Part shown: piece after piece, positions 2,062 to 27,049 of the stretch
Position numbering within the stretch: the first letter of the stretch is position 1
Layout: every line of letters starts with the position of its first letter
Origin: Dicyema japonicum
Taxonomy: Eukaryota; Animalia; Dicyemida
NCBI GenBank assembly: GCA_011109175.1
Contig: RDEW01000138.1
Coordinates: forward strand, 3,269 to 42,049
Reading direction: 5' to 3'
Length of the DNA stretch: 38,781 nt
Notes under the pieces: model-generated
What the model saw: only the letters and a program-made list of their open reading frames with translations
What the model was told of the DNA's origin: nothing
The model's database searches: none
Made by a program: the position numbers and the translations under genes

Positions 2062-3181
2062 AACGAGAGGATCATAAGTTAATAAAGAATATGCCCAATG
2101 TGAAATCGACGTAATCATGTAATTACACTAAATAGCAAATTTTCATAAAAAATCCCGCGCAACTAATATGCACATGTTTTCTTTATAGCAGGAGATAGTT
2201 AGCTTCTAAGAGCCCACTAATATAAGCCCGGTTGCTATCAAGAGACCAGCTGAGATTATTGGGCGCCCATATATGTCTTTTAGAGTCACTAGCATTTTCC
2301 CTCAGGAACCTTCCCCCAAAAATCCCATTGGTTGCTATAAAAGTGGCTCTAGACCGATCATACAAGCAAAAATATTCCAACATCGAGGAATCAATAAAAA
2401 TTAACTAGCATTTCCCCTCAGGAACCTTCCCCCAAAAATCCCATTGGTTGCTATAAAAGTGGCTCTAGACCGATCATACAAGCAAAAATATTCCAACATC
2501 GAGGAATCAATAAAAATTAAAAAAACCTAAATTTATTAAAAAAATAATTATTCTGTCCATATTCCATTTATATATTCAAAATGGTAATTCTTCCTGACAA
2601 GATTCATCCAACTAAAAAACCACCAAAGGCCAAACTGATTCTCCAAACTTTTAATATGATTTCCAGTCTCAATAAGAGCATATTTCCTCATAATATTAAC
2701 TTTTGAATTCTACGAGTATTAAGAATCCCTAACCTCAGTCTCTGATGGTTGGTTTGGGCCATTGCTTTGTTCACTCATTCCTCCAAGACGGAAGGGTCCT
2801 CAAGTTTGCTTTGAGCCGGTTTCGGGAGTTCGTATCATTTTGTGGAAAGGGTTTCCATTGAAATCCCTGATTTGATCCTCTCCACTTTTTTTTAGAATTT
2901 GAGTCTCGCACGTGAATTTTTGGCATTCCTCGAATAAGCTGAAGTCTAACGGGGGAAATTTTTCTAGGTAGCTTTTTTTGTGTGAGGAAAGGTTTTCATT
3001 TCCTCCTCGATTAGATTTAATATTTACAAGATAATTATTTGGTCTCCAGCTTCTTTTACAAGGACATTGTCATCTCCCTGCTCATAATAGGGTAGAGCAT
3101 CTAGAACCACTTGTTCTATAATATAAATATAATCCCACTTTATTTAACAAACAATAAAAAAATGAATATATTTAATAATCA
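2062..3181 (-). repeat. Module B repeat, possibly a decayed LINE 5' region (APE endonuclease start)
   Basis: Homologous to 16568-17702. The minus strand of the second copy gives QRLRLGIFNTRRIYN, resembling the L.I...NVRG start of LINE endonucleases. The repeat is certain; the LINE identity is tentative. Confidence 0.5.
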
Positions 3182-3250: not shown

Positions 3251-3500
3251 CTAGGGCGCCTTGTCTAATTGAACCCTCTGCCCATATGGCATCTCAGGGC
3301 TCTGCCTCCTATACTCCAGTGTCAGGCTCTCTAGGATCCGCTTTAACACAGTGGACTGTAGATAGGCCTGGAGCTTCCTATCTACCCCCAACTGCTTCAG
3401 ATAACCCTTGTGGTACTTTGTTCCAATTCCTTCCCACGTCATTACTATATGAATAACGAGGACCTTGCAACCAAACATCTACCCCATCTCGTTTGCAAGT
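3251..3500 (-). mobile_element. C-terminal fragment of an RLE-type (R2/R4-like) non-LTR retrotransposon
   Basis: ORF GCKVLVIHIVMTWEGIGTKYHKGYLKQLGVDRKLQAYLQSTVLKRILESL matches the post-endonuclease tail pattern V..IPYVMTWDG.VTKYH..YLK.L......AYIQS.VLK.T.E of this element family. Confidence 0.75.
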
Positions 3501-5749
3501 TCTATAATATTATTATTATTATTTAAATTTATTTTATTTTGTTTAATTAATTTTTAATCAAAGTTATCATTATTATTGGTTTAGGACCACGAAGACCTTG
3601 CAACCAAGCATCTACCCCATCTCGTTTGCAAGTTCTATAATATTATTATTATTATTTAAATTTATTTTATTTTGTTTAATTAATTTTTAATCAAAGTTAT
3701 CATTATTATTGGTTTAGGACCACTGAGTTAAAAGAGAAAGAAAAATGTTCTACCTTGTAAAAGAGGAAAAAAATAATGTTTCGTATGGAAGAGGAGGTTG
3801 CAAGATAAATTGACCAATCCCTTATGGTTGATAATTTATCTGGGTCGCTATTTGATTATTATCTTTGATATTAATTTGAAAGCGTGAAAGCGTCCCACTA
3901 GAGATTATGCGATCATAAACAGATGCTCGGAATGCACTTCTTATAAAAATTTAAAAATCCCGATTAACCTGATCACTGCCTTTGGCTCTCTATTAAGAAA
4001 AGGGAGGTAATCTTTACTCTCGTGAAAAACAATGTACACTACTGAGTATCAACAAACGCGATCTGAAGTCTTGGATTCAACAAGTTTCTGGGTCGTCAAC
4101 GACCGAGCATCGAAGCTAATGAAATTTATTTTCTCGTGAAATTCGGCTAAACCTGGTGCGCTACCACAAGATCTCCACGTATGTCTCAATGCCTACCTAT
4201 AAAAATCGAATAGGAAAGTCGTCACTTAATGACGTCGGGACATATCTTCTTTTCTTGTGTCCAGGCCCTTCGTTTTTTCCTCTGCATTGGATAACCTTTC
4301 GGATGTATGGAGTGTCTATCTATGGTAGTTACATTCTTGTATGTATTTGAGAGCATTGGATTACTGATTCGTGAGGATTTTTATCTTCAAGTATTATTTC
4401 ATGATAAATCTCGTTATAGCAAAGATTGCACATGTTTAGAGGTTGTTGAATGCGAATTAAAATAAAGGCTGCAAGTTCCAATACGGATACTTCTACTCAA
4501 GCATTTCTGAATATCTCGAATACTGAATATCAATTTTGAGGAAGATGATGAAACATCAAATCTAGCAGCATCTTAATACTGAAATCGATTTTACTTAATG
4601 AATGTCAAAAATTCATTTTTTATTCTTGAAATATAAACATTACTTTATTAATCACCGCTCTATTTCGTTTTCGAGGGTATATTTATAATTCTCTAACTAT
4701 GCATCTAGTTGTAGCAATGTTATCGTAAACGACAATCTTTGTTGAACATACTTAATATTCGCTCTTTCCAAAATGGTTATAATTTTGTTCTTTCTAGAAA
4801 AGTAAGAAAGACTAAATTAACTTTGATCACTGTAAGCTTTAGTTATCCTTTTCACTTCAAAAAAATAGAAAGCAATTATTCATCAAAATGAAAGTCATTC
4901 CTTTCCAAAAATCTATTTTGGTTAGCTTTTTAAGTCGATACTTCTTTCTCCTTCAATTTCAAAATCAATAATTTTTAATAATATCTCTTAATTCAGGACA
5001 ACTAAATCACTCAAAGTCGAGCAGAAAGACGCGTATTTAGCATGATGAAAGCGACATTTAGAGAAAGTTGTAAATTCTTGAATCTTTACCAGAACTGAAA
5101 TGATCTCTAGTATAGATCATCTTGTCACTAAATTAAACATAATTTTTTAACGTTTATTATTTTAAAAAGTGTCTCTTCAATTTTTTTAATTTCCAAAAAA
5201 CTAAAGCTTATATTCGCCATGGTTTCCGATCCCTGGGATTCAAATAGTCCTGAAAAACATCGCTAATTTTCGCTCATGGGCTTATTTTGGAAAACTCTGA
5301 TAGTCATTAATTTGTTTACAATACAAACATTTATATAATATAATACTAATTATGTTTTTGTCGTCCAGAATAATTGTGTCTATCTATACACTAAGTTTGG
5401 TCACTATTTTTTTCTCGAGAAAATGCGACGCCTAGCTACTCTCATAGCCATTCCCTCCTTCAGTTGATCTCCTTGGATATCTTGAGAAAGAAATCAGCAT
5501 CAATTATGTCGACGGGAATCAAAAATCATTAAATTAAAACAGCCATTCATCCAAATTGGACCCCGCTGACATTATCGACGTTGCGTTGCCTCTCATGATT
5601 ATAACAAGGAGTAACTGGAGAAGCTATCGGGTTTCATGTGCGTAGTGGCTTTTTAGTGTAGCTAAGCGTCCAAGTTTTTTAAATTATGAACTAAATATTA
5701 ACGAAAAATAAATTTGTAAGTCATTATTATAATCTAATATAAAATAATA

Positions 5750-6594
5750 TTAATAATTGAAAATCCCAATCTGTAATGGATAAAAACGTCTTCTTTTATA
5801 TTTTATTAAGTAAGTGATAACAATGGCAACAATAATTACACCAATTACACAAATTGATAATATATATTTGTTTTCTAAATTTAAATTAATATTACTGATT
5901 GCATGAGACTTTATTGTTTTTAGAGTACGATGAGTTGGTGTATAACTTCGATATGTATTTGTCATTAATTTTATATTAAAATATTTTTTTGATTTTATTT
6001 TTCTGAAATCACATCCGAGTGCTAAATGTCGGTTAATATAAGTTACCATTTCCAGTAAATTTAGTGTTATTGTCTGTTTTTGATAGCTGCATTTTCATAT
6101 CTTTTATTTTTATAGTTCCATAATTAGGAATAGTTATAACTAGTTCACTGCAGTTATAATAGCCGTTAGTCGAAATGTTCGGACTTGAAGCATACATAGG
6201 TCCACGAAAAGAAAGCAATTCTAATCCCCATATAACATCTAAATAATTTGATATACGGGAAAATAGTAATGTGAATTTTATATCATTTTTCTTCCATTTA
6301 AGCGCACCAAGATGGTGTCTACGTGAATCAAAATCAAAAATTGCGTCATTTAAATTTTCATATTTCATCTTTTATTTAATTTAATGTATTTACAGTATTA
6401 TCAATTTTATATTCAACTTCAATTATTCCACTAAACAACATTACGACGTGGTTGTTCTTTGTCGCACCCCACATAGGTACATTATTATACAACATTTCAA
6501 AAGTATTAATATTCCTCCCCAATAATTTATTGCTTGCTAAACACGTATATATTCCTATTTTTAATTTACTTTATAAACCTAGTAATTGGAACAT
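5750..6594 (-). CDS. Spliced type I membrane protein with LAMP-like ectodomain, copy 1 (256 aa); exons 6594-6579, 6554-6394, 6368-6047, 6021-5750
   Basis: Removing GT-AG introns 6555-6578 (24 nt), 6369-6393 (25 nt) and 6022-6046 (25 nt) joins track ORFs 6033-6368 and 5750-6049 plus upstream exons into one 771-nt frame. Product: MFQLLGIYTCLAS...FSGIIEVEYK...FTLLFSR...GYYNCSE...MKMQ...FTGNALGCD...YILSICVIGVIIVAIVITYLI KYKRRRFYPL. The same structure is open in all three copies. Confidence 0.85.
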
Positions 6595-6772
6595 CTCACT
6601 TCAATTGTTCCAATTATGAAACAATTTGTTTTATTTAAATAAAATTGAAACTAATATTTTAAATAAAATAAAGAATTAATTTATATTTTTTTAGCTAAAA
6701 ATAAAGTTATCGTGGGATGTAAATATATCATAAGTAACATCAATATAAATGACCTTTAGTTTACTGTTAGGT

Positions 6773-7930
6773 AACCTTGAAATGCAAAAAATTCAATATC
6801 TCCAACAATACTGGACACCAATAATCCTAATTTACTATTAATCGGATCGCTGCATCAGAGAAAACCTTGAAATGCAAAAAATTCAATATCTCCAACAATA
6901 CTGGACCCAAATAATCCTAATTTACCATTAATCGGATCGCTGCATCAGAGAAACTTCACTGACCTGCAAAAATTTCTCAGGAGAATCACATCTCCGTCCA
7001 AAGACTGTACCAGAACCAACAATATACACGGCATTATGCCTTCGCTTTTTATACGAACCCTCAAAGTGAACAAGATACTAGAATCCATACTACCATGAGA
7101 TTGCCTCTATTGAACGACTACTCCAGAAGATTTTCAGAGTTGAATTTCAAGTCTGCATTGTAGAATCATCCATCTCTGGCTTAAATATTGTTCATTAGCT
7201 CTTTGCTTTATCTGGACCACCAAGACTTTACGTTAAAATTGGGACTGTTTATTTTTTTCATGATTTTTCATTTAGTCATGTAAAGCTGTTATAAGTCACA
7301 CCAAGTTTACAAATTCACGAGTTCAGAAAAAGCCGTGGCCTTTTCAACTCTGCTAAATTGTCGGTTGAGAAAGAAATTATCCTCAAAGGCTTCATCAGGG
7401 ACTCTAACCCAGCTTTAATAATGAAATACTCCACCTCATTCGCGAGAAGAGACGCTTAAGGAGATCGAAGATTGATCATCAAAGAGAACTATCCTCACTG
7501 GATAAGCAAATAACCATGTTGATTTCTAATGTCAAAAATTAAAAACGGACTGGATTTTTTTCTTACTTTAAAATCAAAACCTAAAAATTTATGCAGATTC
7601 ATCAAGGATGTTCAGGTCAGTTAAAATGATTCCTATTCCATTCATGAAGGGATGTTTGATAAAGACAAACTAAATAATTTCGCTGTTATGCAAAGAATTT
7701 GATGACCTATTATTGCAATACCAGTCACATTCACATGTCCAAATATAATCGTTCTCAGAGAGTCCAACCAACACGAGGTACGAAGGGTCATCCAATTTCC
7801 CGTACGGCTAATCTATGGTTTGATTCAAAAAGTGCGCGCAACATCCCTGCCAAATAACCTGATGGTCTATGTATAGAGCAATTAGAAGAACTTCAAATTT
7901 GATGATTTTTAAATATTGAATATACGGAAA
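6773..7930 (+). mobile_element. Decayed Jockey/I-like LINE fragment (endonuclease end, linker, RT start)
   Basis: Plus-strand pieces LDH (SDH-like), PSFNNEILHLIREKRRLRRSKIDHQRELSSLDKQI (LINE linker pattern) and NQHEVRRVI (pre-RT EV...I). Repeated at about 13329-14600 and 22401-23470. Confidence 0.55.
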
Positions 7931-7999
7931 ATGAAACATTTATTGCAATTGAAAATTCTTTAGATTTGAAGAATAGTGAACAAGAACCTGAAAAAAATA

Positions 8000-8660
8000 A
8001 GACATGTAGAAAAAACGGATATTGCAGTTGGATTAACTGCATAATTGGAGAAGGTGATGTTAGTGTTCTTATAAGACACGTCTGTGTACTGTTGGGAATT
8101 GCACTGTTTGTACAGGGAAGCAAATCCGTTTCCATTTTGTCGGATAAGGTCTTAAAGTGATCAGGGGATTAGTTTATCTAGTTTCCTGAGATTACTAATA
8201 GTAGTGGATCTCAAGGACTCAATGTCATTGATTTTTTGTTTGTTCGTCCAGGACAGATTGATTCCCCATGACGCACATCCATAGCTGACAGATACCTCAA
8301 TTTTTGTACAATGATTTTAACCCTGGGAAAGGAGTCTTAATGCCACCAAAAGAGTCTAATGCCACCACTTCTGTTGGTAGAAGAAACCGGATGGTTTTAA
8401 GTGTTAATAAATAAATTGAATAGCACTGAGGATAGTCACCTCATACTTGTGATGTAGTACCTAACCCTTAAAGGAATATCACTATTTTCTACAATGGTTT
8501 CTCCCATACTTGTCGCCTTTGGTTATCTTTGAGATACCGACCAGGCATTGGACGTATTCTTAGTCAGATGGATCCTGCAACGCATCATAAAAATTGAAGA
8601 AGACAAAGAGTAGATAGGAATCCCTGCACCAAGTTGGTAGCAGTGTATATCAAACTCATA
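8000..8660 (-). mobile_element. Decayed LINE reverse transcriptase fragment, opposite orientation
   Basis: Minus-strand LSSVLFNLFIN (LSPxLFNLFIN motif), preceded by an FVDF..A.D-like segment and followed by a degenerate FADD region. Repeated at about 14660-15325 and 23540-24158. Confidence 0.5.
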
Positions 8661-8715
8661 GTTAATTTGCGACGCAACGACAGCATTGACCCGTACTGAA
8701 TCTGGTCCCTGCGTC

Positions 8716-9065
8716 GATGTTCTTGCTTAAGAGGAGAAACCAACAGGTCAACAAAAAATTCAGGACAACAATGGAGATATGATTTTTGACGCTATGGAAC
8801 AAGACGAACTTATCGCTTTTCATTTTGAACGATCTTTGACGTACATGGGGAAAGGTCACTCATAATGCAGGAAATCTTGTAAATAAAATCACGATTGGAG
8901 AAGTTATGAACGCAATAGAGAGACTGAAGTGCAATCGCTAGTCAGGAACGGATGGCATAAGTGCTGAGTTACTGAAGTACGACCCCAAAACCCTAGTGGA
9001 AATCGTGGCCAAAGTATTAAACGAAATATTTGCAACTAAGGACCTTCTTCCGTATGGCAAAGGAA
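8716..9065 (+). mobile_element. RTE-like LINE RT fragment
   Basis: ITIGEVMNAIERLKCNR*SGTDGISAELLKY...KVLNEIF. Homologous at DNA level to 24847-25200 of the longer RTE-like copy. Confidence 0.8.
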
Positions 9066-9876
9066 TTCCCTTTTTTTCCTCTGCATTGGATCAACCTTTC
9101 GGATCAATGGAGTGTCTATCTATAGAGTAGTTATTTTCCAGTATCAAGTTGTGAGGATCTGATGATTGATTCGTGAGGATTTTTATCTTCAAGTATTATT
9201 TCATGATAAATCTAGTTATAGCAAAGATTGCACAGATTTTGAAGTTTTTAATGCGAATTAAAATGAAGGCTGCAAGTTCCAATACGTTTTTTTTCTACTC
9301 AAGCATTTCTGAAAATCTCGAATAATGAATTTCAGTTTTGAGGAGGATAATAAGAAATCAAATCTAGAAGCACCATAATACTGAAATCGATATTACTTAA
9401 TGAATGTCAAAAAAGTCTTTTTTATTCTTGAAATATTAGCATTATTAATCACCGATCCAATTCGTCCTCGAGGGTATATTTATAATTCTCTATGTATCTA
9501 GATGTAGCAATGTTATCGTATACGGCAATTTTCATTGAACAGAGTCAATATTCGCTCTCTTCCAAAATGGCTGTAATTATGTTCTTTCAAATTAACATCG
9601 ATTTTTGTAAGATTTAGTTAAAAAATATTATAAAGCAACTATTCATCAAAATGAAAACCTTTCCTTTCCGAATTCTATTTTGGTTAGCTTTTTCTTTCAA
9701 TTTCAAATCAAGTTTTCCAGATTTTTTGAATTTATTAACTTTTGAAATTTTCTCTTTATTCAGAAAAACTAAATCACTCAAGGTCAATCAGAAAAACGCG
9801 TATTTAGCATTATGAAAACAACAGTTAAAGATAGTTGTAAAATCCTGAATTTTTCGAAAACAGAAATGATCTATAG

Positions 9877-11673
9877 CAATGGTTCGCATTTTTTTATTTA
9901 ATCGCCCCCTCAACTTTTTTTTCGCCCCTTATTTTACTAGTCAAAAGTTATTACCACATCTAGAAATTATTTAAGGAATATATTTTTATTTAAAAATCAT
10001 AGTTTTAATAATATCCCTGTTGTTGATGAGTATTCACAAGATTCTCTAAATTCGCCTTTCTTTTCGCAATCCTTCTATCTCCTCTTTCTTGTACATTTAT
10101 TTTGTTTCGTTTTTTACCGATGAATTTTTTTCCATACTCAAAGGTATTTAGAATTTAGATTTTGTGACTATTTCTACTTATCTTCCGACTTCATTAATAA
10201 AGAATTTGAAATTAATGCCGTATATCAATAATTCTAGCTAAACTTCAAAATATGAAAATAAATTGGAAAATATATAATAAATTTGACATTCACAAAATTT
10301 CTTCATGATTTAAAGCTACGTAAAGAATTGATTAGTCAAGGAATTATTTGATAAAACTTTGATCAATCTGCACGTTCAATAATAAAGAAATAATAAAGTG
10401 ACTAAAAAATATACATGACCTCAAGAAGCAATTTCTTTTTTTAATCTGTTCTTTATCTTTTCTCGTTCCATAAGACTTGCGTCATGTTATTCAATTATAT
10501 TTTTGTCGTGTTTATCAACATTATTTGTAGAATTAAGTATATCCTCGAAGCCATCGTCCTATCCGATATGATGACTTCATTTATAGCTATAATGACTTCA
10601 TAGATCTAAATTGAGTATATTCCATCCCAATCAAAATATCCATGACGAGGAATCAACAAAAGCGATCCAAAGTCTTGGATTCGAAAGTTTCTAGCTAGTT
10701 CTTCACCGATTTAAAAAATCAACGATGGAATCGCATAATTTTACAAATCGTAAAACCTGTTTTTGCAATTATCTCTGCAACTTTGACTGAATAAAATAGT
10801 CCAGAAACATTTTGAAATATACTTTTATTAAAACGAGAAATTAAAGTTTATTTTATTTTCATAATTCATTTTTAATTCAAAAAAAATTTTGTTTTTTTTT
10901 TCTAATTGAGTTGGGAAGTTAACGTTTTAAATGTTCGATTAAGCGCGATGGCTTCAAGCCGCATTGGAAAAAACTGTACCACATTGCAAGCGTTATGAAG
11001 ATCCTGAGGATTTTTAAAATATCCAAAAGAAATATATTCCTCTTTATAGGTTCTAACTTTTTTTGAACAAGACTCATCACGAAGTATTAGAAATCACGCT
11101 AATAATTTTAAATGAAATATTATTATTATTATTGAACCAAGACTGGATGTCATTTACAAACAGTTCATCGAGTCAACAATATGACACACTTGTAATGTCT
11201 GGGGAACTAACCTTGGAGCAAAGAATTTAGACAAGATCTGTAACATTCAAATGAAGGCAGCAAACCTACTAAGGAAATCTTCTCGTGTGGACATCATGGC
11301 CAGAAACCTTGAAAATATGATAGAGACGACTGGAACAGTACCCCTGCGAAGGACTCGAGTATGCGAAGCACACCCATATCGGAAATGCGCAGGAACGAAG
11401 TTGGAACACCGAGAAAAAAATTCGAAAACCGTTGAGGTAATCCGGGATCACCTGAATATGTTTATTTTGAATATGACAGTGTTTTTCTGGTTCTATAATA
11501 ATAAATAAAATATAATATAAATGTTGTAGTTTTAATATAATATAAATAAAATAACACTCGATTATTTATGTGTCTTTAATTTTTCATATGACATTGAGCT
11601 CTTAGAGCATCATCTCCCCTTGATAAGAAAAATCGCCCAAAAGGGGAGATTCTCCCCTCGTTGTGAACCACTG
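9877..11673 (-). mobile_element. Internally deleted hAT element, Buster/ZBED5-like
   Basis: Imperfect TIRs CAATGGTTCGCA (9877) and TGTGAACCACTG (ends 11673) with AATCGCCC subterminal motifs. Minus-strand relic around 10780-11080: SKKVRTYKEEYISFGY...QCGTVFSNAA/KPSRLIEHLKR...SVKVAEIIAKTG, matching the BED finger and N-terminus of Buster-type transposases. Absent from module A copies 0 and 1. Confidence 0.8.
11190..11460 (+). mobile_element. Probable LINE C-terminal fragment nested in the hAT element
   Basis: GC-richer island. NVWGTNLGAKNLDKICNIQMKAANLL resembles the post-RT Y...VW......KL..LQ.KA.R pattern. Second copy at about 19900-20170. Confidence 0.4.
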
Positions 11674-12310
11674 GTATCAATCTACTCAGTAGATTGAATA
11701 TAATTTTTTAAAGTTTTATTATTTTAAAAAACGGATCTTCAATTTTTTTAATTTCCAAAAAAACCGAAGCTTATTTTCGCCAAGGTTTCCGACCCCTGCG
11801 ATTCAAATAGTCCTGAAAAGCATGGCTTATTTTCGCTCATGGGGTTATTTTGGAAAACTCCGATAGTCATTATTTTGTTTACAATACAAACATTTATATA
11901 GTATAATACTAATTAAGTTTTTGTCGTCGAGAATAATTGTGTCTATCTATATACTAAGTTTGGTAACTATCTTTTCTCTAGAGATTGCGACGCCTAGATA
12001 CTCAGTATCTATTCCCTTTTTCAGTTGATCTCATAGGATATCTTGAGAAAGAAATCAGCATCAATTATGTCGACGGGAATCTAAACTCATTAAATTAAAA
12101 CAGCCATTCATCCAAAGTGGACACCGCTGACATTATCGACGTTGCGTTGCCTCTCAAGATTATAACAGGGAGTAACTGGAGAAGCTATCGGGTTTCATGT
12201 GCGTCGTGGCTTTTTAGTGTAGCTAAGCGTCCAAGTTTTTTAAATTATGAACTAAATATTAACGAAAAATAAATTTGTAAGTCATTATTATAATCTAATA
12301 GAAAATAATA

Positions 12311-13152
12311 TTAATAATTGAAATTCCCAGTCTGTAATGGATAAAAACGTCTTCTTCTTTTATATTTTATTAAGTAAGTGATAACAATGGCAACAATAAT
12401 TACACCAATTACACAAATTGATAATATATATTTGTTTTCTAAATTTAAATTAATATTACTGATTGCATGAGACTTTATTGTTTTTAGAGTACGATGAGTT
12501 GATGTATAACTTCGATATGTATTTGTCATTATATTAAAATATTTTTCCGATTTTATTTGTCTGAAATCACATCCGAGTGCTAAATGTCGGTTAATAAAAG
12601 TTACCATTTCCAGTAAACCTAGTGTTATTGTCTGTTTTTGATAGCTGCATTTTCATATCTTTTATTTTTATAGTTCCATAAATAGAAATAGTTATAACTA
12701 GTTCACTGCAGTTATAATAGCCGTTAGTCGAAATGTTCGAAGATGAAGTATGCATAGGTCCACGAATAGAATTCAATTCTAATCCCCAGGAAACATGCAT
12801 ATAATTTGAATCACGGGAAAAAAGTAATGTGAATTTTATATCATTTTTCTTCCATTTAAGCGCACCAGGAAAATGTTCACGTAGATCAAAATCAAAAATT
12901 GCGTCATTTAAATTTTCATATTTCATCTTTTATTAAATATAATTTATTTACAGTATTTCCAATATTATATTCAACTTCAATTGTTCCACTAAATAACGTT
13001 ACGACGTGGTTGTTCTTTGTCGCACCCCACATAGGTACATTATTATACAACATTTCAAAAGTATTAATATTCCTCCCCAATAATTTATTGCTTGCTAAAC
13101 ACGTATATATTCCTATTTTTAATTTACTTTATAAACCTAGTAATTGGAACAT
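12311..13152 (-). CDS. Spliced type I membrane protein with LAMP-like ectodomain, copy 2 (255 aa); exons 13152-13137, 13112-12952, 12926-12605, 12579-12311
   Basis: GT-AG introns 13113-13136 (24 nt), 12927-12951 (25 nt) and 12580-12604 (25 nt) sit at the same positions as in copy 1. The spliced frame is open and indels versus copy 1 are multiples of 3. Confidence 0.85.
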
Positions 13153-15829
13153 CTCACTGCAATTGTTCTAATTATGAAACAATTTGTTTTATTTAAATAA
13201 AATTGAAACTAATATTTTAAATAAAATAAAGAATTAATTAATATTTTTTAGCTAAAAATAAAGTTCTCGTGGGATGTAAATATATCATAAGTAACATCAA
13301 TATAAATGACCTTTAGTTTACTGTTAGGAAACCTTGAAATGCAAAAAATTCAATATCTCCAACAATACTGGACCCCAATAATCCTAATTTCCCATTAATC
13401 GGATCGCTGCATCAGAGAAACTTCACTGACCTGCAAAAATTTCTCAGGAGAATCACATCTCTGTCCAAAGACTGTACCAGAACTAACAATATACACGGCA
13501 TTATGCCTTCGCTTTTTATACGAACCCTCAAAGTGAACAAGATACTAGAATCCATACTACCTGAGATTGCCTCTATTGAACGGCTACTCCAGAAGATTTT
13601 CAGAGTTGAATTTCAAGTCTGCATTGTAGAATCATCCATCTCTGGCTTAAATATTGTTCATGAGCTCTTTGCTTGATCTGGACCACCTAGACTCTACGTT
13701 AAAATTGGGACTGTTTATTTTTTTCATTTATTTAGTCATGTAAAGATGTTATAAGTCACACCAAGTTTACAAATTCACGTGTTCAGATAAAGCCGTGGTT
13801 TTTTCAACTCTGCTATATTATAGGCTGAGAAAGAAATTATCCTCAAAGGCTTCATCAGGGACTCTAACCCTGCTTTAATAGTGGAATCCTCCACCTCATT
13901 CGTGAGAAGAGACGCTTAAAGAGATCNTTTTCATGATTTTTTCATTTAATCATGTAAAGCTGTTATAAGTCACATCAAGTTTACAAATTCACGAGTTCAG
14001 AAAAAGCCGTGGTTTTTTCAACTCTGCTAAATTGTCGGTTGAGAAAGAAATTATCCTCAAAGGCTTCATCAGGGACTCTAACCTTGCTTTAATAATGAAA
14101 TACTCTACCTCATTTGCGAGAAGAGACGCTTAAAGAGATCGAAGATTGATCATCAAAGAGAACTATCCTCACTGGATAGCAAATAACCATGTTGATTTCT
14201 AATGTCAAAAATTAAAAACGGACTGGATTTATTTCTTACTTCAAAATCAAAACCTAAAAATTTATGCAGATTCATCAAGGATGTTCAGATCAGTTAAAAT
14301 GATTCCAATTCCTTTCATGAAGGGATGCTTGATAAAGATAAACTAAATAATTTCGCCTTTATGCAAAGAATTTGATGATCTAAAATTGCAATATCAGTCA
14401 CATTCGAATGTCCAAAGAAACTCGTTCCAAGAGAGTCCAACCAACACGAAGTACGAAGGGTCATCCAAGTTCCCGTACCGCTAATCCATGGCTTGATCCA
14501 AAAATGCGCGCAAGTTTTCTGCCAAAAGACCTGATTGTCTATGTATGGAGCAATCAAATGAACTTCAAAGTTGATGATTTTTAAATATTGAATATACGGA
14601 AAATTAAACATTTATTGCAATTGAAAATTCTTTAGATTTGAAGAATAGTGAACAAGAACCTGAAAAAATAAGACCTGTATAAAAAACGGATATTGCAGTT
14701 GGATTAACTGCATAATTGGAGAAGGAGATGTTAGTGTTCTTATAAGACACGTCTGTGTACTGTTGGGAATTGCACTGTTTGTACAGGGAAGCAAATCCGT
14801 TTCCATTTTGTCGGATAAGGTCTTAAAGTGATCAGGGGATTAGTTTATCTAGTTACTTGAGATTACTAATAGTATTGGATCTCAAGGACTCAATGTCGCT
14901 GATTTTTTGTTTGTTCCTACAGGACATATTGATTCCCCATGAAGTACATCCATAGCTGACAGATACCTCAATATTTGTAAAATAATTTCAACGCTGGGAA
15001 AAAAGTCCACCAAAAGAGTCTAATTGCCTCCACTCCTGTTGGTAGAAGAAACCGGATGGTTTCAAGTGTTAATAAATAAATTGAATAACTTTCAGGATAG
15101 TTACCTCATACTTGTGATGTAGTACCTAACCCTTAAAGAAATGTCACTATTTTCTACAATGGTTTCTCTCATACTTGTTGCCTTTGGTTATCTTTGAGAT
15201 ACCGACCAGGCATTGGACGTATTCTTAGTCAGATGGATCCTGCAACCCATCATAAAAATTGAAGAAGACAAAGAGTAGATAGGAATCCCTGCACCAAGTT
15301 GGTAGCAGTGTATATCAAACTCTTAGTTAATTTGCGACGCAACGACAGCATTGACCCGTAGTGATTATTTATTTATTATTGCCGCAGGACAACTAGGTTA
15401 AAAGAGAAAGAACATCCCTTCTAACTATGCCATCCCAGACCGACAAGAGGGCATTTTGAAGCGGTATCGGAGTCTTCTTATTTTTTGGGTGAGTATAGTG
15501 ATGACCCAGTCTAGTTTGGTTGAATAAACAATGGGTAGTAAGATTTAAAAAAATACTGAATTTTCGAATGAATAAAGCATCTGATGCATCAATGTCTTGT
15601 TTCAATTCCCGTCTGACCCTGACGATAGGAAAATTGGTAAGAATCACCTACTTTGCGATAGAAGAGGGTAATTATCATTGAAGTATTGAATGTTCTTAAT
15701 AATAAAAATATTAATGAATTTATTTTATAATTAAATGCTGTCATCTTGTCAGAATTAAATATCACAAAATATGTTGAGATACGTATTAATACGACGATAT
15801 TTGATTTTTTCGTTTGCAAGATTGAAAAA

Positions 15830-16095
15830 ATGACAACATGGAGAATTAATTCACGGAATCGTCATAAACAGGCTGTGAGTGAAAAGAAAAGTGTCAAGAG
15901 TATGAACCTCTTGCAAAACAGTTCTCTCTTCTCTACAACCACTGAATAAAGATTGATTATGAACTGGGACGGAGTATTCTCAAAATGATTTAAGAATTAC
16001 ATGGATAAACTATATATCGACAAAAAAACGGAAACTCGCATCCAATCAGTTATGTTGAACAGAACTCTTGAAAGTACGGTAGTTGAGTAAAGCAC
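15830..16095 (+). mobile_element. Second decayed C-terminal fragment of an RLE-type non-LTR element
   Basis: QEYEPLAKQFSLLY...IMNWDGVFSK*FKNYMDKLYIDKKTETRIQSVMLNRTLES, the same motif series as 3251-3500. Confidence 0.65.
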
Positions 16096-16340
16096 GGGTC
16101 AAGGTCTTCGATAAAGATTTCATTTCTGCTTCAGTGAATGTTGGAAGAGAAGACTTGGTTGATTCTAAAGTGGAGAGACTATAGAAAAACGATAGAAGCA
16201 ATTTGGCTAGTTCGCTGATATGGTATTCAGTTATGATGTTTTGAATAAATAAATAAAATTTTTTTTCCATTCATCACAAATAATTGATTCAGATATTTCA
16301 GGGTTAATACATTTTCTAAGGAATTCAAAAATAAAACTAG

Positions 16341-17702
16341 ATGAAGCAGAAAACCAAGATGCTCTACGCAAAATCCAATCCTCGAAAAGAGCGTGAAGAC
16401 GTCTCACTGAAGATTATCAATGGTGCTCTACAACTAACGAGAGGATCATAAGTTAATAAAGAATATGCCCAATGAAGCAGAAAACCAAGATGCTCTACGC
16501 AAAATCCAATCCTCGAAAAGAGCGTGAAGACTTATCACTAAAGATTATCAATGAAGTTCTACAACCAACGAGAGGATCATAAGTTAATAAAGAATATGCC
16601 CAATGTGAAATCGACGTAATCAAGTAATTACACTAAATAGCAAATTTTCATAAATAATCCCGCGCAACTAATGTGCACATGTTTTCTTTATAGCAAGAGA
16701 TAGTTAGCTTCTAAGAGCCCACTAATATAAGCCCGGTTGCTATCAAGCGACCGACTGAGATTGTTGTGCGCCCATATAAGTCTTTTAGAGACATTAGAGA
16801 CCTTTCCTCAAAAATCCCATTGGTTGCTATAAAATTGGCGCTAGACCGCTCATACAAGCAAAAATATTCCAACATCGAGGAATTAATAAAAATTAAAAAA
16901 AGACCGAAATTTATTGAAAATTAATTATTCTGTCCGTATTCCATCTATAACTACCTACTCAAAAGCATAATTCTTCCTGACAAGCTTCATCCAACTAAAA
17001 AAACACCAAAAACCAAACTTATTCTCCAAACTTTTAATATGATTTCCAGCCTCAATCTGAGCATTTTTCCTCATAATATTTAACTTCCTTGATTTTCTCC
17101 CTTCAAATATTCACGATCCAAACCTTATCCCATCCAACTTCTTCTGCATGTAATCCGACAATTTCAAAAGTACACTGTTATGCTTCAACCAGACTTCCGA
17201 GCTGTATGAAAATTGTAGTTGAATATTGTAAATTCTACGAGTATTAAAAATCCCTAACCTCAGTCTTTGATGGTTGGTTTGGGCCATTGCGTTGTTCACG
17301 CATTCCTCCAAGACGGACGGGTCCTCAAGTCTGCTTTGAGCCGATTTCGGGAAATCGTATCATTTTGTGGAAAAGGTTTCCATTGGAATACATGATTTGA
17401 TCCTCTCCATTTCGTTTTTTAGAATTTGAGTCTAGGCACGTGAATTTTTGGCATTTCTCTAACAAGCTGAAGTCTATCGGGGGAAATTTTTCTAGGTAGT
17501 TTTTTGTGTGAGGAAAGGTTTTCATTTCCTCCTCGATTAGATTTAATATTTACAAAATAATTATTTGGTCTCCAGCTTCTTTTACAAGGACATTGTCATC
17601 TCCCTGCTCATAATAGGGTATAGCATCTAGAACCACTTGTTCTATAATATAAATATAATCCCACTTTATTTAACAAACAATAAAAAAATGAATATATTTA
17701 AT
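16341..17702 (-). repeat. Module B repeat, second copy
   Basis: Colinear with 2062-3181 from 16568 onward. Includes about 150 bp (17070-17220) missing from the first copy. Confidence 0.75.
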
Positions 17703-18336
17703 GTGACCGGTTCAGAATGAGATACGGTTGAATACGAGCCGTTAAATATCGATATTCAATGTACCGATTTAAAAAGCCAATCAAACAAAATGGCAAACGT
17801 CCCGTATTAATGATTGAACCTTAAATTTTTGAAAAAATGAAGTTTTATATCTGAACAAAGTTTGCTTTAAACTAGTCAAATTATCCACAACATTAACAAA
17901 ATATAATTTACATCACTTTAATTTTTGATAATATAAATTTCATTAAATTAAAATTTCTACTAAACAGAAAAACGTTACTAANACGGCAATCTTCTTTGAA
18001 CAGAGTCAATATTCGCTCAATTCCAAATTGGCTCTAATTATGTTCTTTCAAATTAACATCGATCATTGTAAGATTTAGTTAAAAAAATTATAAAGCAACT
18101 ATTCATCAAAATGAAAACCTTTCCTTTCCGAATTCTATTTTGATTAGCTTTTTCCTTCAATTTCAAATCAAGTTTTCCAGATTTTTTGAATTTATTAACT
18201 TTTGAAATTTTCTCTTTATTCAGAAAAACTAAATCACTCAAGGTCAATCAGAAAAACGCGTATTTAGCATTATGAAAACAACAGTTAAAGATAGTTGTAA
18301 AATCCTGAATTTTTCGAAAACAGAAATCATATATTG

Positions 18337-20483
18337 CAATGGTTCGCAATTTTTTTATTTAATCGCCCCCTCAACTTTTTTTTCGCCCCTTATTTTACTA
18401 GTCAAAAGTTATTACCACATCTAAAAATTATTTAAGGAATATATTTTTATTTAAAAATCATAGATTTAATAAAATCCCTGTTGTTGATGAGTATTCACAA
18501 GATTCTCTAAATTCGCCTTTCTTTTCGCAATCCTTCTATCTTCTCTTTCTTGTACATTTATTTTGTTTCGTTTTTTATCGATGAATTTTTTTCCATACTC
18601 AAAGGTATTTAGAATTTAGATTTTGTGATTATTTCTACTTATCTTCCGATTTCATTAATAAAGAATATGAAATTAATGTTCGTATATCAATAATTCTAGC
18701 TAAACTTCAAAATATGAAAATAAATTGGAAAATATATAATAAATTTGATTTTTTTTCTCCATGATTAAAAGCCATGATTAAAAGCTACGTGTAGAATTGA
18801 TTAGTCAAGGATTTATTTGATAAAATTTAATCAATCTGGCACGTTCAATAATAAAGAAATAATAAAGTGACTAAAAAATATACATGACCTCAAGAGAAAA
18901 TTTCTTTTTTAATCTGTTCTTTATCTTTTCTCGTTCCATAAGACTTGCGTCATGTTATTCAATTATATTTTTGTCGTGTTTATCAACATTATTTGTAGAA
19001 TTAAGTATATCCTCGAAGCCATCGTCCTATCCGATATGATGACTTCATTTATAACTATAATGAGTTGATAGATCTAAATTGAGAATACTCCATCCCAATC
19101 AAAATATCCGTGACGCGGAATCAACGAAAGCGATCCAAAGTGTTGGATTCGAAAGTTTCTGGCTAGTTTGTCACCGATTTAAAAAATCAAAGATTGAATC
19201 GAATAATTTTACAAATCGTAAAACGTTTTTGCAATTATCTCTGAAACTTTGAATGAATAAAATAGTCCAGAAACATTTTGAAATATACTTTTATTAAAAC
19301 AAGAAATTAAAGTTTATTTTATTTTAATAATTCATTTTTAATTCAAAAAAATTTTTGTTTTTTTCTAATTGAGTTGGAAAGTTAATGCTTTAAATGTTCG
19401 ATATACTTTTATCAAAACGAGAAATTAAAGTTTATTTTATTTTCATAATTCATTTTTAATTCAAAAAAATTTTTGTTTTTTTCTAATTGAGTTGGGAAGT
19501 TAACGTTTTAAATGTTCGATTAAGCGCGATGGCTTCAAGCCGCATTAAAAACTGTACCACATTGCAAGCGTTATGAAGATCCTGAGGATTTTTAAAATAT
19601 CCAAAAGAAATATATTCCTCTTTATAGGTTCTAACTTTTTTTGAACAAGACTCATCACGAAGTATTAGAAATCACGCTAATAATTTTAAATGAAATATTA
19701 TTATTATTATTGAACCAAGACTGGATGTCATTTACAAACAGTTCATATTCCTCTTTATAGGTTCTAACTTTTTTTGAACAAGACTCATCACGAAGTATTA
19801 GAAATCACGCTAATAATTTTAAATGAAATATTATTATTATTATTGAACCAAGACTGGATGTCATTTACAAACAGTTCATCGAGTCAACAATAGGACACAC
19901 ATGTAATGTCTGGGGAACTAACCTTGGAGCAAAGAATTTGGACAAGATCTGTAACATTCAAATAAAGGCAGCAAACCTACTAAGGAAATCTTCCCGTGTG
20001 GACATCCTCGCAAGAAACCTTGAAAATATGATAAAGGCGACTGGAACAGTACCCCTGCGAAGGACTCGAGTATGCGGAGCACATCCATATGTGAAATGCG
20101 CAGGAACGAAGTTGTAACACCGAGAAAAAAATTCGAAAACCGTTTAGGGAAGCCGGGATCACCTGAATTTGTTTATTTTGAATATGACGGTGTTTTTTTG
20201 GTTCAATAATAATAATTGAAATATAATATAAATGTTGTAGTTTTAATATAATATAAATAAAATAAGACTCGATTATTTAAATATGACGGTGTTTTTTTGG
20301 TTCAATAATAATAATTGAAATATAATATAAATGTTGTAGTTTTAATATAATATAAATAAAATAAGACTCGATTATTTATCCGTCTTTAATTTTTCATTTG
20401 ACAATGAGCTCTTCGAGCACCATCTCCCCTTGATCAGAAAAATCGCCCAAAAGGGGCGATTCGCCCCTTGTTGAAAACCACTG
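18337..20483 (-). mobile_element. Second copy of the deleted Buster-like hAT element
   Basis: TIRs CAATGGTTCGCAA (18337) and TTGAAAACCACTG (ends 20483, reverse complement CAGTGGTTTTCAA). Same BED-finger relic. Same insertion point as in unit 2. Confidence 0.8.
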
Positions 20484-21384
20484 GTATCAATCTACTCAGT
20501 AGATTGAATATAATTTTTTAAAGTTTTATTATTTTAAAAAATGTTTCTTCAATTTTTTTAATTTCCAAAAAAACCGAAGCTTATTTTCGCCAAGGTTTCC
20601 GACCCCTGCGATTCAAATAGTCCTGAAAAGCATGGCTTATTTTCGCTCATGGGGTTATTTTGGAAAACTCCGATAGTCATTATTTTGTTTACAATACAAA
20701 CATTTATATAGTATAATACTAGACCCCTGCGATTCAAATAGTCCTGAAAAGCATGGCTTATTTTCGCTCATGGGGTTATTTTGGAAAACTCCGATAGTCA
20801 TTATTTTGTTTACAATACAAACATTTATATAGTATAATACTAATTACGTTTTTGTCGTCGAGAATAATTGTGTCTATCTATATACTAAGTTTGGTAACTA
20901 TCTTTTCTCGAGAGATTGCGACGCCTAGCTACTCAGTATCTATTCCCTTTTTCAGTTGATCTCCTAGGATATCTTGAGAAAAAAATCAGCATCAATTATG
21001 TCGACGGGAATCAAAACTCATTAAATTAAAACAGCCATTCATCCAAAGTGGACCCCGCTGACATTATCGACGTTGCGTTGCCTCTCATGATTATAACAGG
21101 GAGTAACTGGAGAAGCTATCGGATTTCATGTGCGTCGTGGCTTTTTAGTTTAGCCAGGCGTCCAAGTTTCTTAAATTATGAACTAAATATTAACGAAAAA
21201 TAAATTTGTAAGTCATTATTATAATCTAATTTATAACAGGGAGTAACTGGAGAAGCTATCGGGTTTCATGTGCGTCGTGGCTTTTTAGTTTAGCCAGGCG
21301 TCCAAGTTTCTTAAATTATGAACTAAATATTAACGAAAAATAAATTTGTAAGTCATTATTATAATCTAATAGAAAATAATATAA

Positions 21385-22223
21385 TTAATTGAAATTCCCA
21401 GTATGTAATGGATAAAAACGTCTTCTTCTTTTATATTTTATTAAGTAAGTGATAACAATGGCAACAATAATTACACCAATTACACAAATTGATAATATAT
21501 ATTTGTTTTCTAAATTTAAATTAATATTACTGATTGCATGAGACTTTATTGTTTTTAGAGTACGATGAGTTGATGTATAACTTCGATATGTATTTGTCAT
21601 TATATTAAAATATTTTTTCGATTTTATTTTTCTGAAATCACATCCGAGTGCTAAATGTCGGTTAATATAAGTTACCATTTCCAGTAAACCTAGTGTTATT
21701 GTCTGTTTTTGATAGCTGCATTTTCATATCTTTTATTTTTATAGTTCCATAAATAGGAATAGTTATAACTAGTTCACTGCAGTTATAATAGCCGTTAGCC
21801 GAAATATTCAAAATTGAAGCATACATAGGTCCACGAATAGAAATCAATTCTAATCCCCATACAACATCTAAATAATTTGATATACGGGAATATAGTAATG
21901 TGAATTTTATATCATTTTTCTTCCATTTAAGCGCACCAAGATGGTGTCTACGTGAATCAAAATCAAAAATTGCGTCATTTAAATTTTCATATTTCATCTT
22001 TTATTTAATTTAATATATTTACAGTATTATCAATTTTATATTCAACTTCAATTATTCCACTAAACAACATTACGACGTGGTTGTTCTTTGTCGCACCCCA
22101 CATAGGTACATTATTATAAAACATTTCAAAAGTATTAATATTCCTCCCCAATAATTTATTGCTTGCTAAACACGTATATATTCCTATTTTTAATTTACTT
22201 TATAAACCTAGTAATTGGAACAT
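21385..22223 (-). CDS. Spliced type I membrane protein with LAMP-like ectodomain, copy 3 (254 aa); exons 22223-22208, 22183-22023, 21997-21676, 21650-21385
   Basis: GT-AG introns 22184-22207 (24 nt), 21998-22022 (25 nt) and 21651-21675 (25 nt). The spliced frame is open. Confidence 0.85.
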
Positions 22224-24189
22224 CTCACTTCAATTGTTCTAATTATGAAACAATTTGTTTTATTTAAATAAAATTGAAATTAATATTTTAAATAAAATAA
22301 AGAAGTAATTAATATTTTTTTAGCTAAAAATACAGTTCTCGTGGAATGTAAATATATCATAAGTAACATCAATTTAAATGACCTTTAGTTTACTGTTAGG
22401 AAACCTTGAAATGCAAAAAATTCAATATCTCCAACAATACTGGACCCCAATAATCCTAATTTACCATTAATCGGATCGCTGTATCAGAGAAACTTTACTG
22501 ACCTCCAAAAATCTCTCTGGAAAATCACATCTCCGTCCAAAGACTGTACCTGAACCATCAATATACACGGCATTATGCCTACGCTTTTTATACGAACCCT
22601 CAAAGTGAACAAGATACTAGAATACATACTACCTGAGATTGCATCTACTGAACGGCTACTCCAGAAGGTTTTCAGAGTTGAATTTCACGTCTGCATTGTA
22701 GAATTATCCATCTCTGGCTTAAATATTGTTCATGAGCTATTTGCTTGATCTGGACCACCTAGACTCTACATTACAAATTGGACTGTTGATTTTTTCATGA
22801 TTTTTTTTTCATTTAGTCATGTAAAGCTGTTATAAGTCACACCAAGTTTACAAATTCACGAGTTCAGAAAAAGCCGTGGTTTTTTCAACTCTGCTATATT
22901 ATAGGCTGAGAAAGAAATTATCCTCAAAGGCTTCATCAGGGACTCTAACCCTGATTTAATAGTGAAATCCTCCACCTCATTCGTGAGAAGAGACGCTTAA
23001 AGAGATCGAAGATTGATCATCAAAAAGAACTATTCACTGGATAAGCAAATAACCATGTTGATTTCTAATGTCAAAAATTAAAAACGGACTGGATTTATTT
23101 CTTACTTCAAAATCAAAACCTAAAATTTATGCTGATTCATCAAGGATGTTCAGGTCAGTCAAACTGATTCCAATTCCTTTCATGAAGGGATGCTTGATAA
23201 AGACAAACTAAATAATTTCGCCGTTATGAAAGAATTTGATGACCTATTATTGCAATATCAATCACATTCGAATGTCCAAAGATACTCGTTCTAAGAGAGT
23301 CGAACCAACACGAAGTACGAAGGGTCACATAAGTTCCCGTACCGCTAATCCATGGCTTGATCCAAAAATGCGCGCAACCTTTCTGCCAAAACACCTGATT
23401 GTCTATGTATGGAGCAATCAAATAAACTTCATAGTTGATGATTTTTAAATATTGAATACACGGAAATTAAAATATCTATTGGAAATGAAATTTTTTAGAG
23501 ATTTAGATTATAGTGAACAAGTATCTGAAAAAAAGATCTGTAGAAAAAAACGGATATTGCAGTTGTATTAACTGCATAATTGTAGAAGGTGATGTTAGTG
23601 TTCTTATAAGACACGTCTGTGTACTGTTGGGAGTTGCACTGTTTGTACATGGAAGCAAATCCGTTTCCATTTTGTCGGATAAGGTCTTAAAGTGATCAGG
23701 GGATTAGTTTATCTAGTTTCTTGAGATTACTAATAGTAGTGGATCTCAAGGACTCAATATCATTGATTTTTTGTTTGTTCGTCCAGGACAGATTGATTCC
23801 CCATGAAGTACATCCATAGCTGACAGACCCCTCAATATTTGTAAAATAATTTCAACGCTGGGAAAGGAGTCTTAATGCCACCAAAAGAGTCTAATGCCAC
23901 CACTCCTGTTGGTAGAAGAAACCGGATGGTTTCAAGTGTTAATAAATAAATTGAATAGCACTGAGGATAGTCACCTCATACTTGTGATGTAGTACCTAAC
24001 CCTTAAAGGAATGTCACTATTTTCTACAATGGTTTCTCCCATACTTCTTCCTTTGGTTATCTTTGAGCTACCGGTCAGGCATTGGACGTCTTCTGAGTCA
24101 GATGGATCTTGCGACGTATTATAAAAATTGAAAATGCTTGCACCAAGTTGGTAGCAGTCTCTATTGCACAAATGTCTGAAACGCTTTTA

Positions 24190-25860
24190 AAGCGCTTGGA
24201 AGAGCTTAAAATAACATCTTTCAATGTTAGAGGGATCAGTAAGGAATGGAAAAGAAACCTGTTATATTCAAATCTGGGGAGATATGGTGCAGACTTGGGA
24301 TGCCAACAAAAGACAAAAGTACAGGCTGGAATGGACGAGGTACATAGAGATTATAGACTCATTTGACTACCATCGTCATCAAAACACAATGGACAGGGAT
24401 TTGCTGTGCACAAGAAATTTGTTCGTGGGAGTCGTCGGTGTTATAATGTTAATGACAGAATCAGCATACTGCAAATACGGGATGGGGTCAAACGTACTTC
24501 GAGGGCCCTTATCTCAATTATAAATGTTTATGCACCCCACAGTGGACAAGTCGCCAAAGATTCGGACGAACTTGACGCTTTCTACGTGCAGCTGTAGAGG
24601 ACATATGCCGAACTGGAATCGTCTTTTCTAGTCTTTATTGCCAGAGACTGGAATGCTAAAGCAGGAGTACGTTGGGAGCATGAGTCGACTATCGCTAGAA
24701 AACATGACGAATACAGACAGGAAATGCTATTTAAAGTTGGAACGAACTAGGATACAAAGAAAAATCAGAAAATTAAACTGTGAACATGTTGCAAGCGTTT
24801 TGGATGCCAGACTAAAAAAAGTAGAAAATCAAATTAATTGTGAGCTGATGTTCTTGCTTAAAAAGAGGAACCAACATGGCAAACTAAAAATTTAGGACAA
24901 CAAAGGGAATATGATTTTTGACGCTACGGAACAAGCCGAACTTATTGCTGCTAATTTTGAACGACTCTGACGTTTACGGGGAAAAGGTGAACCTATTCAC
25001 TGGTAATGCCGGAAATCTTGTAAATGAAATGAAGGTTGGAGAAGTTATGATAGCAATAGAGAGACTGAAGTGCAATAACTCGTCAGGACCGGATGGCATA
25101 AGTGCTGAGTTACTGAAGTAAGGCCCTAAAACCCAGGTGGAAATCGTGGCCAAAGTATTAAACAAAATGTTTGCAACTAACAACCTTTTTCCTTTGGGCA
25201 AAAAAATTCTGGTGCCGATTCAATAATTGAATAAGAGGGCGGACCCTGTGGAAAACCTGCGCCCAGTAGTCCGACTCAATACGCTAAGAAAGGTCCTTGC
25301 TCTTGTGATGCTGGATCGTGTGCAAGAGCCTGTGAATGAATTCCTGTCATCGAGCCACAGTGGATTCAAGACAGGCAGATCTACCGCTGATGTGGTCTGG
25401 AGGCATAGGTGGCGTTGTGCCACTTACCAATGATTTGAAAGTGCGTCTACAATTTTGGGGATCGATATGTCGAGAGCTTTCGACATAATTCGCCGAGGAA
25501 AGCTTATTGATGTTTTGCGGGGATTCCTTAATAGGGATTCTGTCAGGATGATAGAAGTTTTATTGTCGAACACAGAACTGACGTTACGAGTTTGGAGTAC
25601 CTCGTCCAGGAATTTTTCGACGACTGTGGTTTCCCCATTGCTGTTTGTGGTATACCTGGAAGCAGCACTGCGTGGTCTTAAAAGTTTTTATAATGGCCAA
25701 ATCACCGAAATTATATATGCTGATGATGTGGACTTGGTATCGGAAGATAAAGCAGCCTTGAGGCGGTTACTTTACGTTGCCCCTGCAGAACTTGGGAAAT
25801 GGTTTCTTACAGTGAATACAACTAAAACTGAAATNATTTTAGGGAGATCCACTAGTAATT
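24190..25860 (+). mobile_element. Decayed RTE-like LINE (APE endonuclease plus RT), 3' truncated
   Basis: KITSFNVRG, IINVYAPHS and FIARDWNAKAG (endonuclease). EVMIAIERLKCNNSSGPDGISAELLK, ENLRPV, SGFKTGRSTAD, GIDMSRAFD, SPLLFVVYLE, IIYADDVDL and VNTTKTE (RT). Multiple stops. Confidence 0.9.
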
Positions 25861-27049
25861 TGAGTAGGTATCGGTGAGAAAATCGAATTCCCAGTTAAAT
25901 TGGAGTATCCTTTCGTTAGTTGGTAGAAGTTAAAAAACACACATGGTTTCATCGTTGTACCCATCCTGATTCTAGACAAGATGGAGCAGTCCTCATCAAT
26001 AAAAACTCGTCTGAGCAGTTATTATAAATATCCGCTCTCATTGATCTCCTCCTTTATTCTCAAGTTCCGACTATACTGAGCGTTTTAGAATTCTTGGTGC
26101 ACTCTGCTCGGGCATGTCAATGGACTCAATATCCTTCACGTCTTCGTTATGCTTCTGGCACCGTCATCCAGTTTCTTTGAACGTCCTCCTGTTTTGTCTG
26201 AGAATGAGTGAATTATGTTACTTCTATTTTGTTGAACCGTTCAAATTCGATGGCATAGGATTCCGGATTGTAGTCGTTCCAACAGTCTCGTTTTTTCATA
26301 AAATTGACAACGGTATGTCCGCCGTCAGGTATTATTAATTAGCGAACACCTTCTTTGTAATCTTAGGGTTAGTTTTTCGCGGTCTCTAGGAAATAACGAA
26401 TACCGATTAAACATCAAAGAAGTCCTTCTGCTTATGTGTCGTGGCACCACAGATCTCGTAGGACCCAGGTATAAACTATCCATATAGTGTACCTCATTTT
26501 TCTCTCATTGTTTTTGGTATGTATCAATTTCTATATTTGGCTAATTTAGCTGTTAGAGTTGATTGATTAACAACTCCATAAACAAAAAACAATATATGAA
26601 TTGATTTTTAATTATTTATTTTAATAATTATTATTTTTATTTATATAAATTATAATAAAAAACTGAATGAATGGATAAATTTTCATTATAATTAAAAAAC
26701 TGAATGAATGGATAAACTGCGCGTGGCGCCATGCGGTGCTACGTGGATAGTTGTATTTTCCTTCCCTCCAATGGCGTCACTGGATCACCTTACTGAGGAG
26801 CGCCCAATGCCTGGACGGCATCAAGAAGATCCAACAATTATTCCCCGGGGACAACGTCGTTGCCTGGTGACGTGTTCTGGAATGCTTGAACGAGTAGGAT
26901 CAAGGAGTTAGTTAGTATGGTTACCCTTGGTCTTTGGAAATAATTTTAATTTTTAATTTTAATTATAAAATAAATTGAGTAAGGTTAGATGTAAAAGGGT
27001 AGCTGAAATACCATGGTGCCCGTCTCGATAGGCCTGAACTTATAATTTT

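Follow-up and report, generated by a model that had tools for sequence, protein, structure and literature searches.

Three tandem copies of a four-exon gene were found on the minus strand of a 38,781-nucleotide stretch of Dicyema japonicum DNA (contig RDEW01000138.1; the whole stretch is called the window below). On balance, we judge these copies to represent a real lineage-specific (orphan) protein-coding gene, of which the window contains three tandem paralogs and other parts of the genome probably contain more.

Gene model and predicted micro-introns

Splicing the minus strand of copy 1 at three GT..AG introns (24, 25, and 25 nt) gives a predicted gene of four exons with an open frame of 256 aa, from the ATG at 6594 to the stop at 5750. 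Exon 1 (6579..6594) consists of the ATG and 13 nt and begins the N-terminal hydrophobic segment. It is followed by intron 1 (6555..6578; 24 nt, GT..AG, starting with GTT), exon 2 (6394..6554; residues 6-59), and intron 2 (6369..6393; 25 nt, GTAAA..AAAG). Exon 3 (6047..6368; residues 60-166) carries the ectodomain core with the sequons and Cys132 and is separated by intron 3 (6022..6046; 25 nt, GT..AG, starting with GTA) from exon 4 (5750..6021), which encodes Cys170, the basic Ser/Thr stalk, the transmembrane (TM) helix (5804-5866), the polybasic tail, and the stop. The same four-exon model applies on the minus strand to copy 2 (12311..13152; exons 13152-13137, 13112-12952, 12926-12605, and 12579-12311), encoding 255 aa, and to copy 3 (21385..22223; exons 22223-22208, 22183-22023, 21997-21676, and 21650-21385), encoding 254 aa. 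All eighteen splice dinucleotides are intact across the three copies, and their coding sequences are separated by just two indels, one of 6 nt (Lys-Leu) and one of 3 nt (Arg), both in frame. The initial annotation had described a triplicated four-exon gene with an intact frame of 254-256 aa, which splicing at the GT..AG borders confirmed in all three copies, and had stated that every indel between the copies is in frame (6 nt KL, 3 nt R), which also holds, these being the sole coding indels.

A tblastn search of the window with the spliced protein returned just the three copies and no further paralog, and no record was found when the 111-aa ORF of exon 3 was looked up in a public gene-position index. 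Upstream of the gene, a 16-nt motif lies 8-23 nt before the ATG on the minus strand (6602..6617 in copy 1, 13160-13175 in copy 2, and 22231-22246 in copy 3). The motif is kept in all three copies, occurs in a diverged form in genomic contigs of paralogs, and may be a promoter or 5′-UTR element.

The model was compared with chance expectation using a dynamic program that starts from every ATG on both strands and, allowing no more than three GT..AG introns of 20-30 nt to be skipped, reports the longest open frame that ends in a stop. The three copies took ranks 1, 2, and 3 in the whole window at the exact ATGs of the model, and the runner-up measured 198 aa. In 50 random Markov sequences of 38.8 kb, built with the dinucleotide statistics of the window or of its AT-rich 5-7 kb stretch, the longest paths were 107-202 aa, and none of the 50 reached the length of the gene copies. 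Because the three copies are top-ranked and lie beyond all random maxima, the gene model is confirmed and is not a product of chance. A search for a longer model with up to six introns of 18-45 nt yielded no extension in any copy. The 198-aa path starts at 24224 on the plus strand, in a GC-richer region beside a reverse transcriptase (RT) fragment; the random controls span this length, and it is probably no gene.

Among animals, only the dicyemid Dicyema japonicum and the myxobolid myxozoans are known to have introns this small, and both show splice signals reduced to GTa...AG (PMC13644364). Judged by their sequence, the introns of 24, 25, and 25 nt, with GTT, GTA, and GTA at their starts and AG at their ends, appear to fit this published description of micro-introns (PMC13644364), and their size and reduced GTa/AG signals agree with the publications on D. 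japonicum and the myxobolids (PMC13644364; PMC6736024). The window has a GC content of about 33%; the D. japonicum assembly comprises 67.5 Mb with 36.7% GC, 49% repeats, and 4.1% gaps (PMC6736024). Gene finders that are not tuned to introns of 24-25 nt miss genes of this kind in apparently repetitive DNA.

Predicted membrane glycoprotein and comparison with LAMP

The sequence features confirm the layout of a putative type I single-pass membrane glycoprotein. Residues 1-12 are hydrophobic (mean hydropathy 1.58), and at 12 residues this N-terminal segment is short for a signal peptide. An ectodomain of ~160 aa (residues 13 to about 171) follows, in which Cys132, Cys170, and the sequons NIS, NCS, and NNT are shared by the three copies. 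Between Cys170 and the TM helix, whose first residue is 217-219, lies a Ser/Thr-rich, basic stalk of 45-47 aa. The helix is a single strong TM segment of 21 aa (residues 219-239), with a 19-residue Kyte-Doolittle maximum of 3.0, and is followed in each copy by a tail of 17-18 aa that begins with the KYKRRR of KYKRRR(R)FYPL. Cysteines are located at positions 10, 132, 170, and 224. Cys10 belongs to the hydrophobic N-terminal stretch and Cys224 to the TM helix; with both outside the ectodomain, just one Cys pair is possible within it, and the C-terminal Cys motif is split by intron 3. The type I membrane-glycoprotein layout reported by the initial annotation was recovered in all three copies, including the sequons, the 21-aa TM segment, and the KYKRRR(R)FYPL tail. 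Its remark that the tail lacks a canonical GYXXphi motif also stands, as the tail has no Tyr with a bulky hydrophobic residue at +3 and no dileucine motif.

On the basis of this layout, a route from gene to membrane can be proposed. The transcript would lose its three GT..AG introns of 24-25 nt, and the product of 254-256 aa would enter the ER via its short hydrophobic N-terminus and be N-glycosylated at the three conserved sequons. Cys132 and Cys170 would form the single disulfide of a β-rich ectodomain, which the basic Ser/Thr stalk of about 46 aa would lift above the membrane, with the one TM helix as its anchor. The polybasic tail (KYKRRR) would set an N-out, C-in orientation.

The initial annotation had assigned the ectodomain to the LAMP domain (PF01299), an assignment that the homology searches do not bear out. 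Its proposed HMMER comparison with PF01299, run as a Pfam hmmscan on the separate exon products (exon 2, exon 3 of the three copies, and exon 4), gave no PF01299/LAMP match at E≤10, a reporting threshold at which the filters yet drop most matches above about 0.1. The exon 4 product gave only sub-threshold Pfam matches, to RIFIN and TMEM154, which lie over the stalk, TM helix, and tail; the match to the RIFIN C-terminus had E=0.0034 and 17.8 bits against a cut-off of 32. LAMP was likewise absent from the results of PDB sequence searches. In an exhaustive HMMER search, a profile of the three exon 3 products was run against 1.84 billion representative proteins and returned two matches at E≤0.001, both to unrelated tandem-repeat proteins and neither to a LAMP. 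Protein-atlas neighbors of the exon 3 product scored no higher than 0.65 and included no LAMP, and the language-model recognition score of this product was low (1842). AlphaFold2 modeled six β strands for the 107-aa exon 3 piece alone at low confidence (pLDDT 43), and a Foldseek search of the PDB with this low-confidence model produced nothing at E≤0.001 and no LAMP. The view of the initial annotation that the family is undescribed is upheld to the extent that known relatives are absent from the searches run, including the exon 3 profile search of 1.84 billion proteins, although the absence of homologs there is equally expected of a non-gene.

Structural features were also compared with those of the LAMP family (LAMP-1/2, DC-LAMP, BAD-LAMP, and CD68; PF01299). 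The Dicyema product resembles this family as a predicted type I membrane glycoprotein with a short cytosolic tail and an ectodomain of ~160 aa that is probably all-β, with a Cys pair near its C-terminal end. Four hallmarks are given for the family in the DC-LAMP structure paper (PMC3409847): a domain of 150-200 aa whose two disulfides (four Cys) are completely conserved, direct adjacency of this domain to the TM helix, one Pro and two Gly conserved in that helix, and a short C-terminal tail with a lysosomal sorting motif of the GYxxPhi type. All four are absent from the Dicyema protein. Whereas LAMP has two disulfides, the Dicyema ectodomain can form one; whereas the LAMP domain adjoins the TM helix, a stalk of 45-47 aa intervenes here. 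The Dicyema TM helix contains no Pro and one Gly in place of the Pro and two Gly of LAMP, and its tail of 17-18 aa has neither the YxxPhi form of the lysosomal sorting motif nor a dileucine. The LAMP β-prism is built of 11 strands; for the 107-aa exon 3 piece, the one part folded, six were modeled at pLDDT 43.

These comparisons bear directly on the proposal that the product is a highly divergent single-domain LAMP, a β-prism protein in which the first disulfide, TM signature, and sorting tail have been lost. The roughly LAMP-like size of the ectodomain (about 160 aa), its apparently β-rich model, and two cysteines 38 residues apart near its C-terminal end are compatible with such a protein, as are some short collinear motifs. 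The motif matches listed by the initial annotation were made by eye, with no statistic behind them. The proposal is opposed by the missing Pfam match of the exon pieces at E≤10, by the absence of LAMP from the PDB sequence, exhaustive HMMER, protein-atlas, and Foldseek results, and by the lack of the paired disulfides, the TM-adjacent domain, the Pro and two Gly, and the sorting-motif tail listed for the family (PMC3409847). LAMP ancestry is therefore not supported by the sequence and fold comparisons, and membership in the family cannot be claimed. Since Pfam and AlphaFold saw exon pieces and not the whole spliced protein, a very remote LAMP origin retains a small probability, and we consider it very unlikely. 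The Dicyema gene leaves knowledge of LAMP proteins unchanged.

Constraint, possible decay, and proposed sequence exchange

Pairwise dN/dS among the three copies is 1.04-1.16, and variable sites make up 6.5% of alignment columns in exons, 5.4% in introns, and 5.5% in flanks. With dN/dS near 1 and exons no better conserved than introns or flanks, the copies in the window appear to be without purifying selection. These values are what would be expected if the copies were young, decaying pseudogenes, in which a once-functional gene underwent recent segmental triplication and the frames are intact for want of time. dN/dS is close to 1 in every pair and every region, and the fraction of variable sites is alike in exons, introns, and flanks. 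Against such decay, no stop or frameshift is present in any of the three copies; when substitutions were simulated under neutrality in the number (51 copy-specific) and with the spectrum observed, the probability that no copy acquires a stop was 0.076. Both coding indels are also multiples of three, and the splice sites are intact in all copies.

Further evidence on this point came from contigs of four public runs of one 2019 sample, in which 155-642 contig pieces per run matched at ≥90%. Contigs of all four runs cross all three introns unspliced, with no joints at the intron borders, and the runs thus behave as genomic DNA. A search limited to RNA-labelled libraries listed no run. Among the 31 coding variants listed in these genomic contigs there are no stops, and the ratio of non-synonymous to synonymous changes is 25:6, near the ratio of sites and in this respect consistent with decay. 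Eleven of the 31 variants are missing from copies 2 and 3, so that further paralogs must exist. A minority contig variant has a 1-nt deletion at 5867, which suggests that some family members are broken and lends the pseudogene explanation additional weight.

The contigs also point the other way. At 6372/6373, inside intron 2, loose ends mark where paralog contigs depart from the window sequence; at this site they carry a different sequence of 23-24 nt (GTAAT...AAAG), after which exon 2-like sequence resumes. Intron 2 thus retains its position and ends among paralogs although it varies in sequence and length, a pattern expected of a spliced intron, and this constancy of position despite changing intron length argues against decay. 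Contig-summed depth, which is a rough guide to copy number, is ~10-40x that of a single contig over the tail and TM helix, both the last third and the beginning of exon 3, exon 2, and the ATG, and ~2x over the adjacent 3′ and 5′ flanks, the start of the stalk with intron 3, and the exon 3 core. Across the wider family, most exon bins therefore exceed the adjacent flanks in summed depth, which also speaks against pseudogenes. Taken with the lack of stops in the window, these observations lead us to rate recent pseudogenes as a rather doubtful explanation, and we retain a protein-coding orphan gene as the preferred reading.

Differences among the copies are unevenly placed. In copy 2, a divergent patch of ~250 nt (12743..12998, minus strand) runs from the end of exon 2 through intron 2 and the first half of exon 3, and the majority of the differences unique to this copy fall within it. 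The copy-2-unique differences are clustered, with 21 in 161 alignment columns (420-580) versus 13 in the other 933 (p=1.7e-10). Inside the patch, synonymous divergence (0.13-0.16) is raised together with non-synonymous divergence (0.17). Because the synonymous changes rise with the non-synonymous ones, intron 2 included, the patch points to DNA exchange with a more distant paralog and not to amino-acid selection alone, and by its sequence the "hypervariable" core of copy 2 resembles the product of gene conversion. Diversity of the ectodomain core would by the same token derive from gene conversion between paralogs and not from amino-acid selection alone.

Possible role and repetitive surroundings

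The product most likely serves in the parasite's outer cells as a glycoprotein of the surface or of endocytic membranes, and it is not demonstrably a LAMP. Both nutrient uptake and host contact in Dicyema take place entirely via the outer cell membrane, and such families are candidates for the host interface. If expressed, the gene would add a lineage-specific, locally amplifying family of membrane glycoproteins to a very small published gene set (5,012 genes). A more far-reaching suggestion, which we put forward tentatively and regard as unlikely, is that it belongs to a dicyemid-only family with tens of members, surface or endocytic-membrane glycoproteins with constant ends and a core reshuffled by gene conversion. 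If true, one of the simplest animals would possess a variant-surface-protein system where it meets the cephalopod kidney.

Variant membrane-protein gene families are found in other parasites, for example the VSPs of Giardia and RIFIN/STEVOR of Plasmodium, and offer a functional analogy only. By that analogy, the Dicyema genes would be similar in being multi-copy, in conserving the N-terminus and the TM-tail region with a more variable ectodomain core, and in showing signs of sequence exchange between paralogs. They differ from those families in that there is no homology and in that the host setting of Dicyema is the cephalopod kidney.

The three gene copies lie in a tandem segmental repeat (5116..24132) composed of units at 5116-11675, 11676-20721, and 20722-24132+, with 92-97% identity among the units. 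Unit 2 is ~2.5 kb longer than unit 1. Its extra part (15364-17983) has blocks of 89-95% identity in common with 2062-3176, which suggests, from sequence similarity, an inserted repeat element. Elsewhere in the window, a 140-aa ORF at 25455-25877 on the plus strand matches RVT_1 (E=1.6e-11), its translation containing one X (an N), and is a fragment of a non-LTR-type retroelement. Other ORFs tested in the window gave no family match. The initial annotation had placed the gene amid dead transposable-element DNA, a description borne out by the RT fragment at 25455-25877 and left without backing by the other tested ORFs, which lack a family match. Directly 3′ of the gene, positions 5650-5686 show a summed contig depth up to ~165x that of neighboring bins in all four runs; a repeat of very high copy number appears to adjoin the gene here.

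These surroundings raise the question of whether a transposable element carries the gene as a passenger or envelope-like gene and accounts, by its own copy number, for the multiple copies. A repeat-rich neighborhood, the RT fragment at 25455-25877, and the very high contig depth in the 3′ flank at 5650-5686 would accord with an element of this kind. A search around the gene for terminal inverted or long terminal repeats revealed none that is meaningful, so no such repeats bracket it, and no TE protein domain (transposase, integrase, or RT) was detected in the ORFs of the 6.5-kb unit. Moreover, the high depth over the gene is limited to exons and does not reach the adjacent flanks, and the copies in the window represent a tandem segmental duplication rather than dispersed insertions. 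On these grounds, we find a transposon passenger highly improbable and favor an orphan gene that was amplified in tandem.

Two further features of the assembly were observed. An assembly gap (a run of N) is present in the window at about 1770-2060, and the sequence order on either side of it is provisional. In addition, sequence units of 90-214 nt are repeated in tandem about twice (1.9-2.0 copies), at 91-100% identity, at ten places in the window: 2288-2520, 3456-3723, 6773-6953, 13730-14140, 16341-16605, 19283-19520, 19612-19879, 20177-20378, 20601-20842, and 21091-21370. Such a number of clean two-copy repeats may be an artefact of how the sequence was assembled or its gaps closed, or else a real habit of local duplication in this genome.
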